64,000 bases of DNA from Klebsormidium nitens (Eukaryota; Plantae; Klebsormidiophyceae), in contig DF236994.1 of NCBI GenBank assembly GCA_000708835.1, forward strand, positions 223,257 to 287,256, written 5' to 3'. This document shows, piece after piece, positions 30,893 through 39,368 of this stretch (position 1 is the first letter of the stretch; each line of letters opens with the position of its first letter). The notes under the pieces were generated by a model. It saw nothing but the letters and a program-made list of their open reading frames with translations. It did not search any database and had not been told where the DNA came from. The position numbers and the translations under genes are program-made.

Positions 30893-31260
30893 NNNNNNNN
30901 NNNNNNNNNNNNNNNNNNNNNNNNNNNNNNNNNNNNNNNNNNNNNNNNNNNNNNNNNNNNNNNNNNNNNNNNNNNNNNNNNNNNNNNNNNNNNNNNNNNN
31001 NNNNNNNNNNNNNNNNNNNNNNNNNNNNNNNNNNNNNNNNNNNNNNNNNNNNNNNNNNNNNNNNNNNNNNNNNNNNNNNNNNNNNNNNNNNNNNNNNNNN
31101 NNNNNNNNNNNNNNNNNNNNNNNNNNNNNNNNNNNNNNNNNNNNNNNNNNNNNNNNNNNNNNNNNNNNNNNNNNNNNNNNNNNNNNNNNNNNNNNNNNNN
31201 NNNNNNNNNNNNNNNNNNNNNNNNNNNNNNNNNNNNNNNNNNNNNNNNNNNNNNNNNNNN
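30893..31260. other. Assembly gap (368 N)
   Basis: Uninterrupted run of n. Confidence 1.
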
Positions 31261-31421
31261 AGTGTTAGTTGGAGCTTACTATAATATCTTTGCTTATTAT
31301 CATCTTTCTTGAGAATTATGCAGCGAGCCAGTCTGGTCTCCGGGTTGTCCGCCCAACATGTGCTTGCGGTATCTTGGAAGTTGGCCCCGGTCGAAGCGGG
31401 TAACTTTGCCAGCCTCGAAAC

Positions 31422-31446
31422 TACCCCGGGCCCCGGGCCCGGGGTA
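31422..31446. repeat. GC-rich palindrome (12-bp arms, 1-nt spacer)
   Basis: TACCCCGGGCCC-C-GGGCCCGGGGTA. Confidence 0.85.
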
Positions 31447-32558
31447 CCGCTGTCAGAGCAGTAATTCGACTTCTGCTGCCTGCATCCTCTTGCCAATTGG
31501 CATGCATTGCGAGTGCCAAGCAGCAGTAGACAACTCTCAAGAAAGATAATAGTAAGCCAAGATATTAGTAAGCTCCGACTAACACTAAAAACCCTAACAT
31601 AATTGAAACACCCGCTCCGCACCCGTACCCACCCTAACCACCATACTAACCCTACCCGTCACAGTACGGTTACCTTACTATTATCTGGGCTTACTACTAT
31701 TTTTCTTGAGTTTCATCAGCAGTAGCCAGTTTGTTACGGGGTCAATCATGTGTCAATCATACCGATCGACCGTACTTCGCGAAATCCGGCGGCTACACAT
31801 GACGGAATCATGCAGGGCCCAGCGGATGCGCCTAGCACCCGGGTCCCGGACTCCCGGTCCCCCGGGGTACCACCACGGCAAGTACTGTATGTCGTAATCT
31901 TTTTCCGGTTTCAAGCGTTACGTTTCGAACTTTCGACTCTGCGTCCTTCCGATTCTTGACGCCTCGATGAGTTGACGAGTCTAGCGTACACGGTACGATT
32001 CGTGGTCGGGCGTTGCCAAGCGACTACCCCGGGAGGACTTACCGCCCGATTCTGCTCGGATGTCGCCCGTACTTACGTAGTAGTCTGTACCGTACGAGAC
32101 CCTATACCGGCTCACCTTATTTTTCAAGCGCTTATCTGCAATGCTGGGACCAAATATGGACCATTTGAGACGCGGTTTTCTGCACATATCCTATCTTATT
32201 GAACCCCATCGAGGGCAGAAGTCGGAATTTCATTTGGCCCCGAGGAGGTCCTTGCAGCCCTGAAAACCTTCGATTTTGGCCAAAAAGAGCAAGAAAACTT
32301 GACGGATCGGCGATCGCCGTAGACTGGAACAAGATAACAAATAAACCGAGCCACTTCTAGCTCAGCCCGATCCACTTCTGGACCCAATTCGGTTCTGGGG
32401 CTCGTACGGTAGGTGTTCTGTAGGTGTTCGGAGGCGCCCTCGAACCGGCCCGGGAAGAGCAGCCCGGGACTCGACATCGGTGCAGCAAGTATGGACTCGC
32501 GGCATCCGGACTTGACCGTAACGTCCGAGTCGGAGGCTCAAGAGTCGAACAGTCTGAG

Positions 32559-32825: not shown

Positions 32826-33196
32826 TTGTCTGACACATAGGTAGGTCCGAGGCCGGTAGATCCGAGGTACGGTATTGAATTTCTGAACCCGAGATCTGCA
32901 ATGCAGATCAGCATGCTGTGCACTCTGGGCACAGGCAGCACTTGGCACTGATAGCACTGGCAGTCTGGCAGCATGGCTTTCGGCAAGAGTCGGGGCCAGC
33001 ACAGACATGGTTTTCTGTTTTTGCCTGATACTTTCCTTGGACCGCCAAGGACAAGTAGCTAGGTACTGGGAGGGAGACAAGCTGCGTTGTTCTCACAGAA
33101 AATTCTGGCTCTGTATCTTCAGAAGACGAAGTACAGGGGCTGCGCGGCGGGCTTGCAAGCTCTTTTGTGGGAGACCACTGCTTTTAAGGAGAAACC

Positions 33197-36100
33197 ATGG
33201 CGGGTAGCTCCAGCTGCTCAATGCATTTGGCTCTGTGGGCTACGCTGCTCTTTAGCGTGCTCTTAGGCTGGGGGGGCGCGGCGGCTTTCAACGTTACTTA
33301 CCTCCAGGGATGCGATGTTTCCAACAACCTGACCCAGCTGTGGCTGAATGGCACAGGCCTCAGGGGGCCAATCCCCCCCGAGATTGGCAAGTGTACGGCG
33401 CTGCAAGTTCTCAGCCTGAGCAATAATTCAAGGGTGAATGGGTCCATTCCGCCGGAGATTGGGCAACTGACAAATCTTAGGACCCTGGACTTGGGGAGCA
33501 CCGGCCTCAGTGGGCCTATACCCTCAGAGATTGGCAACTGCACAGCGCTGCAAGTTTTGACCCTGCGGAGCGCCTATAAGGTGAATGGCTCCATTCCCGG
33601 GCAGATTGGGCAATTGACCAACCTCACTACCCTCGATTTGGGGAGCACCAGCCTTACTGGGCCTATTCCAGAGGAGATTGGCAACCTGCCTAGTCTCCAG
33701 GCACTGGAACTGGCGTTTAGCTCTGTGGGGGGCTTCATACCATGGGACGCTCTTTGTTCAAAGACAAACCTCTCGCTGCTATTGCTCAACTCTACGGAGG
33801 TTGAAGGGCCCATCACGCGCGATATTGGCAAGTGCACGGCGCTTAAGTACCTTTCCTTGACTGGCAACACCAAGGTGAACGGCTCCATTCCCGTGGAGAT
33901 TGACCAGCTGGGTAAGCTAACAAAGCTTGATCTCAGTGGCACGAACCTCAGTGGACCTATCCCCAGTGCGTTTGGCAACGTCTCCAGCCTTGAGGTGCTA
34001 TTTCTGAATGATAATAATTTGACAGCACCGGTACCTTGGGAAGCCCTCTGCCAGCTTGCAAAGCTGTATTCTTTGAACCTAGGCGGCAACTCGCAGCTCA
34101 AAGGTCCGCCCCCCCCACCTTGTGTGTGGAGCTTAACACGCCTGCGGAGCCTGGCGCTAACCGACAGCCCAGTGTTTGGGGGAACCCCGCTCCCTTTGGA
34201 CTTTTGCCAGCTCGTCAAGCTGGAGTTTCTGTATCTTGGGTCTACTAACCTAAGTGGCACAATACCCCCTTGCTTAGGCAACATGCCAGGGCTCAGAGCG
34301 TTGGGTTTGTCTGCAAATCGGTTAGTGGGGCCCATTCCCTCCGAGCTTGGCTCGCTCCGCAACCTTACCCTCGCAACACTCAAAGACAACAACCTGACCG
34401 GAAACATTCCAGAGGAATTCAGCGATTTGGCCCAGTTAGTCTGGTTGAACATTGCTAACAACCAACTTTCTGGCCCGTTGCCCGCCAAGGTGTTTGAAGG
34501 CCTCCGGCAACTCATCTCTTTAGACCTGTCCAACAACAGTCTTACGGGGCCTATTCCCACTGAGATAGGCGCCAGCGGAGAGGCGTTTGACTTCCTCAGC
34601 CTGGCGCACAACAACCTCTCCGCAGTCATTCCCCCGGGTCTTGGTAACCTCTCCAACCTAACCTACCTGGATCTGAGTTACAACCAGCTGTCAGGCGAGC
34701 TCCCCGTGGAGCTGAGGGCACTCCGCCCCTCCAAGTTGGGCCACATCAACCTCCGGCACAACAACCTGACTGGGGGGGTGGGCCCTATCGGCCACCTCAC
34801 AGCCCTATCCGTGATTGCCCTCGACAACAACAATTTCAGTGGGCCTATTCCCACCGCGTGGTTCAACAGTACCGAGCTTGGGACGCTCATCCTCTCTTTC
34901 AACAGCTTCTCCGGGCCCATCCCCTCAGCCATTCGCAACATGCGGCCCCCCAACATCGCCGAAGTGTTGGCTCTATTCACCGGCGTTCCTGCCTCCCAAT
35001 TCAGCCTCGTGGAGGAGATCTTTGGGTCTATCACCATAAGCCTCGACTCCAACCAGCTCTCCGGCAGCTTCCCAGACATAGGCCAAATCAACGTCACCGC
35101 CATAATTTTCAATGCTTCCGACAACAAGCTTTCGGGTACGTTCCGTGCGGGGCCCTTCAAAAAGAAAAATTTTACGGCGAGCTACTTAGAGCTGAGCAAC
35201 AATGGCCCCCTCGAGCTCCTCCCCGGGTACAACCTGAGCGGGTGGGAGCTGGTCTCCCTCCCCAATATATCCTCCCAGGGGGATCCCCTCGTCGCGCCGG
35301 ACATGCGGGCGCTGACAATTGCGGGGCGCGGCATCCCCCCCAGCAAGAAACTAGACCTGGCGAGAATCCCCGCCACGTGCCCCTATGTATCTTACGCCAA
35401 CGGCAACGTCAACGACATCAGCTTCTGGGACGCGTGCGACAAGTCTTTTGGATGCGTTGTCAACCTCATTGGCACGGGCTCAAAGCTCAGCCGCGCGACG
35501 CGTGAAAGGGTATGCCTGGGCAAGATCTCGGTCTTCTTGGAGGGCGACTCGCCGAGAGTCCAATTCACAGCCTCGGGAGGCACGGGGTCCGCATTCCTGG
35601 TGAACCGGCAGGGCAGCGTCTACTTCAACGACTCTGCATTTGTCAACAAGCTCGACTTGGGCCCGGGCGGCGTGACTTATACCGGTGTCGACTTTCCACG
35701 CGTCCAACGAGGCAACCTGTGCCGCAACGAGGAGGCGGCGGAGGTGGTGGGCATCACCTATGGCGTCTTCGCAGCGCTTATTCTGGCCAGTGCTGCCGCG
35801 TGGTGGTGCGCCAGGGCCTGGGGCGTTTTCGATAAGACGGGCGGCAAGCTTTCGCCTCGGATTGCGCGTGGACTCGGCGCGGGCGCCTACCTCTGGGGCG
35901 TCGCGGGCTTCTTTGTATCCTGGGGCGATCTGGTGTCCGACGTCCAAGTGGTGGTCGAGATCTGGGGGGTGTGGTCCGCCTGGGTGATTCTGGGACTGAT
36001 CCTCGCGCCGTTTCTCCTGAGCGCGCTGTATGCCGGGCGCGTGCTCTTGGAAGGTTCTGACTACCGTTGGTCCCTTTCGGAGGTGAGAACCTTAACTCTC

Positions 36101-37204
36101 TGTCAAAAACTTTGTTGACACATAAGTGGCACCTCAAGCCCCGCCTCCTTCTGTTCGACGAGACTTCTGTAAAGCTACTGTGTGCTGTGGTTTTGGACAG
36201 AGTTTCACATATCGACCTTCTGGATTCCTTTGTTGGTCCGTCAAATTGATGCGTACATTCAGCAGATCAAGCTGATGCGGACAGAAATTTGCATTGAGTA
36301 GCCTGATTTCTCAGTCTAGCTGAGGCCTAGCGGAGATTGCCAGGCCTCGAGACCCTTTCGCTTGTCATGCTTGTTCTGATCTGGTTTTCCAGGCTGGCGA
36401 CGCCTACTGTGATTAGAGATGTACCGCTCAATTGATAGAGCCATTCGAGTTAAACCAAATGGTTTGATCGGCAGGGACGTAATGGAGATGCATTCATAAG
36501 AATTGCCGTGCAGACAGTACGAATGCAGCCCGTCGCAAGCCTGAAGCGTTGTGCCGTCAAGTGTCCGTTTGATTCGACTTCCTGACCGAACCCAAAACAG
36601 ACAAAAGATTGTATATTGTTGATGTTTGCATTCGAAGGTCTTAATCTTCCCCCTTGACTTGCAGGCGCGCTTCAAGTGGATCCCCTTCTACAACCTGCCC
36701 GACCCCACTGATCCCCTGCCTCTGAGCGCCCTCCCTTTGTGGAAATACCCTCTCGTCCCACTCGCGCTCCCTGTCACTGTCGTATACGTCATCATACTGG
36801 ACCTCCTCGACCTGCTCGACAAGATCGGCGCCCACCTGCGCTTCGGCCCCACCGTTTACTCTCTCCACGCCTACTCCGAGTTCCGGTCGCAAGCGGACCT
36901 GACGCTCCGCTCCATCCCGCAAGCGGTGTTCCAGACGACGCTCTACCTGCTGGGCAGCTCGCGCGCCACGCGCATCTACATCGACGAGCAGATCCTGTTC
37001 CGGTCCGTTGTGCTGTCGCTGCTGAACGTTTTCATCCGGTTCAACTTCCTGGCGCACGAGCACCTCACGACGCGCGTCCCGGTGGGGACCATCCTGCAGA
37101 GGCGCTTTGCGGCGCGCAACTGCCGCGCGACCGCGCTGCGTGCCTTGGGCGACGACGATGAGAAGGTCGATGAGCATATCTTTGAGAAGATCGAGGAGCT
37201 GTAA
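33197..37204 (+). CDS. Signal peptide + >20 plant-type extracellular LRRs + multi-pass membrane module (about 6 TM, XK-related-like), no kinase domain. Exons 33197-36082 and 36665-37204, 1141 aa
   Basis: Hydrophobic signal MHLALWATLLFSVLLGWGGAAA and repeated LxxLxLxxNxLxGxIP units, followed by several hydrophobic stretches. Single GT-AG intron (GAG|gtgaga ... ttgcag|GCG), phase 0. Confidence 0.85.
33352..33645 (+). repeat. Tandem 147-nt (two-LRR, 49 aa) internal duplication in the LRR gene, with a third more diverged copy near 33790-33945
   Basis: GLRGPIPPEIGKCTALQVLSLSNNSRVNGSIPPEIGQLTNLRTLDLGST is followed by GLSGPIPSEIGNCTALQVLTLRSAYKVNGSIPGQIGQLTNLTTLDLGST, with visible nucleotide similarity. 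Confidence 0.85.
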
Positions 37205-39368
37205 TTGCATTTGTACATGCTTTCTAAAATATTGTAACAACAAGGCTCTCCGGCTGCGTATAGGGTGTTTAAGCTGAAGATCATCATTGTGATTGCACAG
37301 AACGGAAGCCTGTCAGCACCCCGCCTAGAGTTGATGCCGTGCTAGGAGAGTCATCAGAGTGGCTGCGCTAGTAGCATCCATTAACTACTTCAGACGAACC
37401 GGACTTGAAGTTGGACGGTCGTGTAGGGGTCACGAGTTTGGCTAGACTCAATCAAGCGCAGCCCTAAACATATTACTGGTGTCTAGTCTGTTCAACTATC
37501 CGTCTAATGAGTCCGTCTCCAATTTCGCATAAAGCTTCTGCGCTAAGTTTGGCAGGGCCCCTTGATTTATCCTATACCGCATTGGTTCATGGATTTTAGA
37601 GCAGATGTACGTCTTACTACCGTAGAGACTTCGACGATGTTCCTGCGTGATCCAACCGTCCAACAACCAAGTATGTTCTTCCGTTTGGGCACCAACTTGG
37701 CAACAAGGACTGATGCGATCATTGGTATTGAGTATGCATGTCGAACTTGGTAAGGTACAAATGCTTTCTCTTTCAAGGCCAGGTTGATTGGCTGCTATAA
37801 AGTGAATGCAAAATGTCGATCTTTCTTTGGAGAGTCGCTCTGGGATGTGACTCGATCATCAGCGTACGGGCTGCTGATTTGGCGGAGTTGCTGTCAACCG
37901 CGCGGCCGCGTTCACTCTCAACTTTCGCGCCTATATAGCCTACTAAGCCGTACTGGCCGTATGCGCGCCCAGCGCCTCGCGCAGGCCAGGCTGCAACTAA
38001 GAAAAGAAAGGTCACGTACTACCTGTTTGAAGAGCTCCTCGTCACTTTTGAAGTGTCGATCATAAGAGGAAGGAAAGAGAAGAGCATAGCGCAGGCGCCA
38101 CGGTTGGCTCGCTAGTATGTGCCAGCTGTTCTTACATACCACTGCAATATTACCTGGGTCTCTGGCATCTGCAACTTAAGTACATACACAGTCGAAGCTC
38201 TACCTAGCTTAGTAGGTGAATGCAGGATCTCCTTAGGTGCATGTGCCAGTCACTGCTGCTCTTTCATGTGGCCGGCTCTGCATGCCCGCCCAATCTATGC
38301 ACCCCTGATTGAAGTATACATGGCGCTTCAAGACCTGCACGTAAATGAAGCTGCAGCGTGATTGGTCCAATCGACTGCGCACCGTCATGCTGATCATCAT
38401 GTCTGCTCAGGCTACCACCCGCCTACAGCATACGTGTCGCACACTTAGAATTCTGGAAGACCATGCACTGACGGCCGAGTCACTGACTGCACCGCAATCA
38501 TTGATAAAAGGGCCACATATGAGGTGATAGCTGAGCGCTGGCTGCACGCGCTTGGATTACGGAATGCACACATCTCAATCGACGGGGAGCTCGTTATGTT
38601 TCAACCCCGAACTTCGTGCAAGAGATCACTCACGTACGAACGCAACTCCGTATGACCACGTCGCTAAACTAGCTGCTCAAGCATTGTCATGTTGAGTCAC
38701 TGCCTGAAATATTTGAGCTCGTGTGCAGTCTTTTTCGGTGTTTCGAAGAGCTGAGCTCGGGTCGCCTAGTGTCCAGCTAAGACTCTAAGTTCTATGCAAG
38801 CTACATGTCGTCTTTAGGAGGGAACCCTTGACGTTCGACTGCGATGCTACCAGAACAGCGCGCTCGGTTGTAAAAGTACTCTCTGGTGCCCCAGCACTGA
38901 GAATGTGCTCAGATGGCGGGCTCGACTTCGTCTCTAATACCTAGCTGCGGCGCCTGTCAAGCCCTAACAAACATATTCAATAGCCGCTACCCTATCCATG
39001 TCATTACTCGTCAATGGAAGGGAAAGTCGATCAGCTTAAATTCCTTAATCTGATCTCGTTTAGGAAGTCACAATCAAGTTCAGATGCGCAACAACCAGTG
39101 CGGAAAAGCTCGTGCTTCTCTCTTACAGCCCTTTGGCGTTGAGGGCACGTTTTCTGCCAGTGAAGATACCCACTTTCCAACTCTACGTATTTAGTAAATG
39201 TCCCTTTAGTAACTGGTGGTGAGCAGTCCTAACAGTGGCGTCTGCTGAGGGGTTCATAGTCCCTCCACAGGGTCACCCGCAGAACGGCCCGCCAAGCAAA
39301 CCGTTCGCTTAATTACGGTCCGCAGGCCGCTCACAGTCTTCCTTCAACAAGATCTCTCCGCGACATAT

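Follow-up and report, generated by a model that had tools for sequence, protein, structure and literature searches.

The 64,000-nucleotide (nt) stretch of the Klebsormidium nitens contig DF236994.1 analyzed here (positions 223,257 to 287,256 of the forward strand, assembly GCA_000708835.1; hereafter the window, whose own numbering is used throughout) carries, at positions 33,197–37,204, what is probably a single expressed two-exon gene for a surface receptor that has leucine-rich repeats (LRRs), has no kinase, and ends in a membrane module resembling one half of an XK-related (XKR) protein, referred to below as the half-XK module. The architecture, i.e., signal peptide, LRRs, juxtamembrane domain, an anchor transmembrane helix (TM0), half-XK module and tail, is almost certainly correct, and the module very probably has an XKR-type fold or descent, as judged by structural modeling; lipid scrambling as its activity is possible, though doubtful. 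The protein is neither an LRR receptor-like kinase (RLK), as it has no kinase, nor an LRR receptor-like protein (RLP), as it is not single-pass. It has not been filed as an XKR either, because the PF09815 profile does not recognize it and the second repeat of XKR proteins is missing; at most, it works like half of one. A receptor of such a design, kinase-less, with LRRs and ending in a half-XK module, was described in no paper found in our literature search, nor did any paper found link XK-related proteins with Klebsormidium or with streptophyte LRR receptors.

That both exons reside on one messenger RNA is indicated by the public sequencing data: in contigs that match the window at 100% identity, exactly 582 nt with GT..AG ends are skipped. 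The listed plus-strand open reading frame (ORF) runs through 973 codons (33,197–36,118), with a donor GT at 36,083–36,084 directly after ...TCGGAG; the acceptor AG lies at 36,663–36,664, is followed by GCGCGC from 36,665, and the phase-0 intron thus delimited brings exon 2 into frame up to a stop codon at 37,202–37,204. The stretch is contained in 20 public runs from 7 studies, and the fraction of its words that is present in many runs (0.84) is the share made up by both exons. Contigs of four runs from four studies were compared with window positions 32,900–37,500; the 582 nt are skipped in all four runs, and a single contig spans 32,967–37,458 across the splice joint. These contigs are regarded as transcript copies because the canonical intron is absent from them, the runs themselves not being recorded as RNA. 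The splice from 36,082 to 36,665 proposed by a first-pass annotation made from the letters of the sequence is thus found in transcript-like contigs. The closest database homolog, a K. nitens protein that is 72% identical (P0002), has an annotation that runs over this junction as well (...RWSPFK on one side, ARLKWIPFY on the other), and the only intron of its gene, GT..AG and in phase 0, occupies the homologous position.

A gene-model artefact, in which exon 2 belongs to another gene and the LRR protein ends by intron read-through as a 973-residue product, could appeal to the 11 codons by which the ORF runs beyond the donor to its stop at 36,118, to the splitting of a close homolog into two models (P0001 and P0019) in a JGI annotation, and to low-depth contigs inside the intron in one run (X1; window 36,144–36,602, depth 3–4 versus 27), the latter being what residual unspliced RNA or some DNA in the library would give. 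The spliced contigs of the four studies, however, are 4–8 times as deep as the intron pieces, and single chains with both parts are found among the proteins of K. nitens, K. subtile and Trebouxia. Moreover, exon 1 residues 894–954 correspond to positions 6–66 of the family's module profile and exon 2 residues 2–152 to positions 75–227, and, as the exon pieces are complementary parts of one profile, the splice unites two halves of a single domain. Exon 2 as a separate gene is ruled out by the spliced contigs, the artefact has next to no chance of being correct, and the original single-gene claim holds. As for the two JGI models (both listed with a longest contig of 19,854 nt), P0001 runs past the donor into the intron and P0019 comprises the exon 2 part only, so that they appear to represent one homologous gene split at its intron. 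At 36,939–36,975 (coding for LLGSSRATRIY), two runs have an isolated 37-nt contig that reaches depths of 89 and 47 versus 27 and 18, and the longer contigs are interrupted there; this is probably an assembly node common to the transcripts of several paralogs.

The ectodomain begins with a signal peptide (residues 1–30, hydrophobic core 11–29; beyond residue 962, numbers are obtained by adding 962 to the exon 2 position), followed by an LRR-like region extending over about residues 40–715, for which Pfam returned LRR_1 (2e-45), LRR_8, LRR_14 and LRR_4 on exon 1. No kinase, nor any other non-LRR family, was found by Pfam in either exon, and no kinase domain was found in the homologs examined in the same way. 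Twelve repeats fit the strict plant LRR pattern with a period of 24–25 residues, this being the pattern-matching subset and not the total LRR count, and the repeats are regarded as being of the plant receptor type because a profile including the last LRRs matches the ectodomains of GSO1, FLS2, PEPR1 and MIK2 in a PDB search. Between the LRRs and the membrane lies a conserved juxtamembrane domain (residues 717–844) with the family-wide motifs FWDAC, GCVVNLIGT, VCLxKISVFLxG and DLGPGGxxYTGVxFxRVQxGNLCxN, for which no Pfam family and, by profile, no PDB relative was found. The signal peptide, plant-type LRRs, non-LRR spacer and absence of a kinase read from the sequence at the outset are therefore all recovered. 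While the signal peptide and plant-type LRR ectodomain are those of an LRR-RLP, the kinase domain of a plant LRR-RLK is absent, and, instead of the single transmembrane helix and short tail of an LRR-RLP, there are five membrane-spanning helices and one half-inserted helix.

These helices (TM0 and, within the module, TM1 to TM4 with the half-inserted helix IH1; Table 1) are indicated by the model of a homolog and by hydropathy, the latter detecting TM0, TM2, the half-inserted helix and TM4 and missing TM1 and TM3. This pattern, with TM1 and TM3 under-called and IH1 over-called, is as reported for XKR9, in which a conserved PQL motif kinks the hydrophilic TM3 and hydropathy misses that helix (PMC8298096). 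All six hydrophobic segments listed by the first-pass annotation are present, and the short acidic tail proves to be a 45-residue extension after TM4 that ends acidic. In the strands after TM2 and the hairpin after IH1, there are W, G and L residues that do not vary across the family. By the positive-inside rule and by analogy with XKRs, the TM3–TM4 loop GSSRATRIYID would lie outside the cell, adjoining the juxtamembrane domain. As the N-terminus of XKRs is cytosolic, an ectodomain would be attachable only via an extra helix, and TM0 together with the basic linker behind it is that helix.

The likeness to XKRs is most apparent at the level of the fold. A model was built on residues 545–775 of P0002 from a 27-sequence alignment (A4; AlphaFold model m747afb0b786b; predicted local distance difference test (pLDDT) score 88.3, predicted template modeling score 0.83) and compared by VIA-align with 48,161 PDB representative chains. 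Rat XKR9 ranked first (Z 11.7, root-mean-square deviation 3.5, 152 residues aligned, chain residues 2–190), human XKR4 second (Z 10.4) and human XKR8 third (Z 9.2), followed by Piezo repeats at Z 8.7 and 8.2. When the Foldseek list was re-aligned, the best five chains were all XKRs (Z 11.7, 11.7, 10.8, 10.4 and 9.2), with TTYH2 next at 7.5; Z was 10.8 for human XKR8, chain 7dce_X of which aligned over residues 7–200. An earlier model from a six-sequence alignment (pLDDT 69) had the same three XKR families on top. XKR9 consists of two related repeats, each of four membrane-spanning helices and a half-inserted helix (PMC8298096), and the match is limited to the N-terminal one: the TM1-TM2-IH1-TM3-TM4 fold of this repeat is found in the homolog's model (four transmembrane helices and one half-inserted helix, the extra anchor helix preceding the module), and the eight transmembrane and two half-inserted helices of a two-repeat XKR are not, the module ending 45 residues past TM4. 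A fold search of the ESM Atlas returned a cluster of 195 amino acids (aa) with PF09815 in 42% of its members (TM-scores 0.55/0.64 over 155 residues), and a feature search there, covering named clusters only, placed a PF09815 cluster first (score 0.90), with 14 of 20 matches in that set; exon 2 alone gave a weaker lead (0.83).

The two motifs that had suggested an XKR relationship in the first place, DLVSD (residues 911–915) and RSIPQ (1044–1048), lie on the helices that appear equivalent to TM1 and TM3 of XKRs, whose acidic residues are conserved across that family (PMC8298096). In Xkr8, D26, D30, K/R134, E137, E141 and R183 are required for scrambling, and Q145 is a proposed lipid contact (PMC8500837); all of these scrambling residues are within residues 7–200, i.e., the portion aligned to the module. 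D911 and D915 have the spacing (i, i+4) of Xkr8 D26 and D30, and, as the alignment starts with model residue 5 versus chain residue 7, the two Asp residues of the homolog would fall on 26 and 30 if TM1 is gapless. D1040, R1044 and Q1048 are spaced as Xkr8 E137, E141 and Q145 are, with a Pro preceding the Gln, and the family consensus reads D[LIF]x[TS]D in TM1 and L[ER][ST]xPQ in TM3. The register of the module relative to Xkr8 thus suggested draws on spacing and alignment ranges. The replacement of the canonical Glu by Arg noted beforehand is R1044, at the position of Xkr8 E141, where paralogs P0004–P0011 keep a Glu (LEAVPQ, LESVPQ).

Several observations weigh against an XKR-type module, and this Arg at the E141 position is one of them. 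PF09815 matched neither the exons (E ≤ 1), nor P0002 residues 520–797 (E ≤ 10), nor 35 distant members (E ≤ 0.01), so the Pfam check proposed with the original reading came out negative; a further 10 long relatives gave only LRR families and never PF09815. Searches of PDB sequences by phmmer and by profile hmmsearch returned no XKR, and a word-index search with the family alignment for PF09815-bearing proteins returned only family members. Foldseek against the PDB gave nothing at E ≤ 0.001 for both models, the best XKR E-value being a non-significant 0.49, although the XKR rows hold by far the highest TM-scores (0.38–0.42) and probabilities of the list. As noted for the alignment tool, a Z below about 13 is reachable by a common helical arrangement, and Z 9–12 is within the range of helical bundles that share the arrangement only (cf. 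the Piezo repeats at 8.2–8.7); furthermore, the module has just one of the two repeats of XKRs, and the fold model is that of a 72%-identical homolog rather than of the window protein. The XK-related reading, then, is upheld by fold, with XKR9, XKR4 and XKR8 at the top of the 48,161 chains, and not by profile.

These same gaps, i.e., the missing sequence or profile link to PF09815 or XKR chains and the non-significant Foldseek result, together with the Z of 7–8.7 reached by other four-helix membrane units and the loss of the TM1 acidic pair in several paralogs (e.g., P0003, P0011, P0048), would suit a generic four-helix bundle without XK/Xkr descent, whose only role would be to anchor or oligomerise, as a multi-pass unit, an LRR receptor-like protein signaling via partner kinases in the manner of land-plant RLPs. 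It is quite unlikely, however, given that all XKR representatives come first in two independent models, that PF09815 is carried by the language-model and Atlas fold neighbors, that the two motifs predicted beforehand from XKRs appear to sit on matching helices with matching spacing, and that an invariant 11-residue loop and ratios of nonsynonymous to synonymous substitution rates (dN/dS) of 0.2–0.37 exceed the needs of a mere anchor. Rank is considered here to outweigh score because all of the top places in two models go to a single family, the one to which two motifs had pointed beforehand, and an XKR-type module is therefore the preferred reading.

An exhaustive profile search of 1.84 billion cluster representatives (E ≤ 0.001) found 86 that match the module profile, and each family member has one module, at its C-terminal end. 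A two-repeat form had been suspected from two matches per protein, both of which turned out to be pieces of one module. Names were looked up for 30 representatives, with six more coming from word-index searches; among those looked up, there are at least 11 proteins named as from K. nitens, the K. subtile transcriptome and the chlorophyte Trebouxia sp. contribute one each, and the remaining ones originate from JGI, ENA or Logan assemblies; most of the named proteins have LRRs. No land-plant name was seen among the representatives looked up, this being a name look-up and not a dedicated survey. LRRs precede the module in all 10 of the long distant members tested with Pfam, while the shorter members are fragments or stand-alone modules. 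The Trebouxia protein (P0085, KAL3154985.1; 847 aa) has LRRs and a weak C-terminal match (E 4e-4) to the TM3–TM4 part, and the architecture thus reaches beyond streptophyte algae.

The window's own protein is absent from the protein database, its nearest relatives being 72–75% identical, and the flanks of the window gene and of these relatives do not align; P0002 may be a paralog or may be the ortholog from a different strain. Comparison of the window gene with that of P0002 gives dN/dS values of 0.19 (LRRs), 0.13 (juxtamembrane domain), 0.20 (TM0–TM2) and 0.37 (exon 2), and the gene is under purifying selection. The 973-codon ORF is not a chance feature, since it is transcribed and conserved and has dN/dS values of 0.13–0.37. 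In the public databases, NCBI names the homologs either “FLS2 kinase” or “hypothetical”; the former name, given to P0002, is misleading, as no kinase domain is present in it. The NCBI model of P0002 (797 aa) also looks N-terminally truncated, exon 1 DNA similarity extending about 830 nt upstream of its annotated start (K. nitens DF237695.1, positions 1369–2201 of the retrieved locus L001). The 173-kb contig that codes for the distant member P0060 (ENA ERZ24825746, k141_309873) has many short called genes without a Pfam match, as if a prokaryotic gene caller had been run on a eukaryotic genome.

As for how such a receptor might work, its parts would follow each other from the outside to the inside as the signal peptide, the LRR ectodomain, the Cys-containing juxtamembrane domain, TM0, the half-XK module (TM1, TM2, the half-inserted helix along with a small beta-sheet in the cytosol, a kinked hydrophilic TM3, and TM4) and the acidic tail. 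A ligand may bind the LRRs, with the signal passing via the juxtamembrane domain, which would adjoin the invariant external TM3–TM4 loop, and TM0 to the module; alternatively, ligand binding might unite two receptors so that their half modules pair, which they could do because the two XKR repeats are related to each other. The module might then act directly in the membrane, moving lipids between the leaflets (as Xkr8, Xkr9 and Xkr4 do) with head groups passing along the charged face of TM1 and TM3, or a partner might dock on its cytosolic sheet, as VPS13A docks on XK; phosphorylation would not be involved. The fully fledged version of the former, a ligand-gated scramblase in which the ligand dimerises the receptors, two half-XK modules pair like the repeats of Xkr8 or Xkr9, and a lipid path opens, appears rather improbable.

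The latter version would make the module XK-like rather than Xkr8-like, docking a cytosolic partner (a VPS13-type bridge-like lipid transfer protein) via the TM2–TM3 beta-sheet, with the receptor positioning lipid transfer at the plasma membrane. It would be in line with the strands predicted after TM2 and the hairpin predicted after IH1, both with their family-invariant residues, with a tail that is not of the caspase type, and with the binding of the VPS13A PH domain by the beta-hairpin that XK has in its second cytosolic loop (PMC9436381). The equivalence between these strands and the XK hairpin is positional only, however, and the conserved intramembrane charges favor a role within the bilayer, which makes docking unlikely.

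The coordinates of the features discussed are compiled in Table 1. Two further observations concern the surroundings of the gene. Window positions 31,000–31,499, which lie some 1.5 kb upstream of where the transcript starts, are very AT-rich (GC content 0.25 versus about 0.5–0.6 nearby), and a 360-aa antisense ORF (33,574–34,656, minus strand) lies opposite the LRR region; it has been treated as a by-product of repeat composition, with no evidence of a gene.

Table 1. Features of the gene and of its predicted product, in window coordinates.
Feature	Position	Strand	Basis
5' untranslated part of the transcript	32967..33196	+	contig starts at 32967-33042
Coding exon 1, 962 codons	33197..36082	+	ORF, splice donor, transcript-like contigs
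Signal peptide, residues 1-30	33197..33286	+	hydropathy; cleavage site judged by eye
Plant-type LRR ectodomain, about residues 40-716; final repeats degenerate	33314..35344	+	Pfam LRR families; pattern count; PDB matches GSO1/FLS2/PEPR1
Conserved juxtamembrane ectodomain, residues 717-844; Cys 728, 747, 753, 773, 842; ends RVQxGNLCxN	35345..35728	+	family alignment, profile search
TM0 anchor helix, residues 850-872, predicted outside to cytosol; then K/R-rich linker	35744..35812	+	hydropathy 2.06
TM1 of the half-XK module, residues 896-924; D911-L-V-S-D915 at 35927-35941	35882..35968	+	homolog model, alignment, profile
TM2 of the module, residues 927-951	35975..36049	+	homolog model, hydropathy
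Intron, 582 nt, GT..AG, phase 0	36083..36664	+	spliced contigs; same intron position in K. nitens homolog
Coding exon 2, 179 codons and stop	36665..37204	+	ORF, splice acceptor, transcript-like contigs
Cytosolic TM2-TM3 region: strand RFKWIPF (36668-36688), half-inserted helix IH1 (36746-36829, residues 990-1017), hairpin AHLRFGPTVYSL (36830-36865)	36668..36865	+	homolog model secondary structure
TM3, hydrophilic helix, residues 1032-1059; R1036, D1040, R1044, P1047, Q1048 (DLTLRSIPQ = 36896-36922)	36872..36955	+	alignment, homolog model, XKR TM3 PQL kink
TM3-TM4 loop GSSRATRIYID, most conserved family motif	36953..36985	+	family alignment; extracellular by inferred topology
TM4, residues 1070-1096	36986..37066	+	homolog model, hydropathy
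Cytosolic tail, 45 residues: basic amphipathic helix, then acidic end (DDDEKVDEHIFEKIEEL)	37067..37201	+	ORF translation, alignment
3' untranslated part	37205..37458	+	end of one contig at 37458; others extend past 37500

Plant-lineage LRR receptors are known to signal via their own kinase or that of a partner, and Xkr scramblases are known to be activated by caspases or kinases, i.e., from within the cell. An LRR sensor joined directly to an Xkr-type core suggests a third route, in which an outside signal would act on the bilayer itself; if the ligand-gated scramblase were true, lipid asymmetry would be the signal, and green algae would possess a kinase-independent form of transmembrane signaling. 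The expansion of the family in Klebsormidium and its occurrence in Trebouxia imply a design that is old or mobile among green algae. The module also suggests that a single XKR repeat can be a stable and conserved unit, which bears on the origin of the two-repeat animal fold and on which half of it is active: every Xkr8 residue shown to be necessary for scrambling sits in the N-terminal repeat (PMC8500837).

Among known systems, the XK-related proteins (Xkr8, Xkr9, Xkr4 and XK; PF09815) share with the window protein the fold of the N-terminal repeat, its predicted topology and a TM3 that is missed by hydropathy, as in XKR9, and putatively also D-x3-D on TM1 and [DE]-x3-[ER]-x2-PQ on TM3. The window protein differs from them in having one repeat instead of two and no match to the PF09815 profile, an additional helix and a large ectodomain of LRRs ahead of the module, an Arg at the E141 position, apparently the invariant GSSRATRIYID loop of its family, and no caspase-cleaved tail. 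The arrangement of a single-pass helix bearing a large ectodomain beside an XKR-type core is also that of Xkr8-basigin and XK-Kell (cf. PMC8500837), except that here the helix and ectodomain are covalently fused to the core, and the ectodomain consists of LRRs instead of being Ig or peptidase-like. With land-plant LRR-RLPs and LRR-RLKs (FLS2, GSO1, PEPR1), the window protein has the signal peptide and plant-type LRR ectodomain in common, whereas it lacks a kinase, is not single-pass, has another juxtamembrane domain, and has a polytopic module as its presumed output. Finally, short XK-like proteins that stand alone in protists (180–200 aa in the ESM Atlas clusters, with PF09815 in part of the members, known from cluster summaries) have the same one-repeat size and fold, and differ in being without an ectodomain, which in the Klebsormidium protein precedes the half-XK module.

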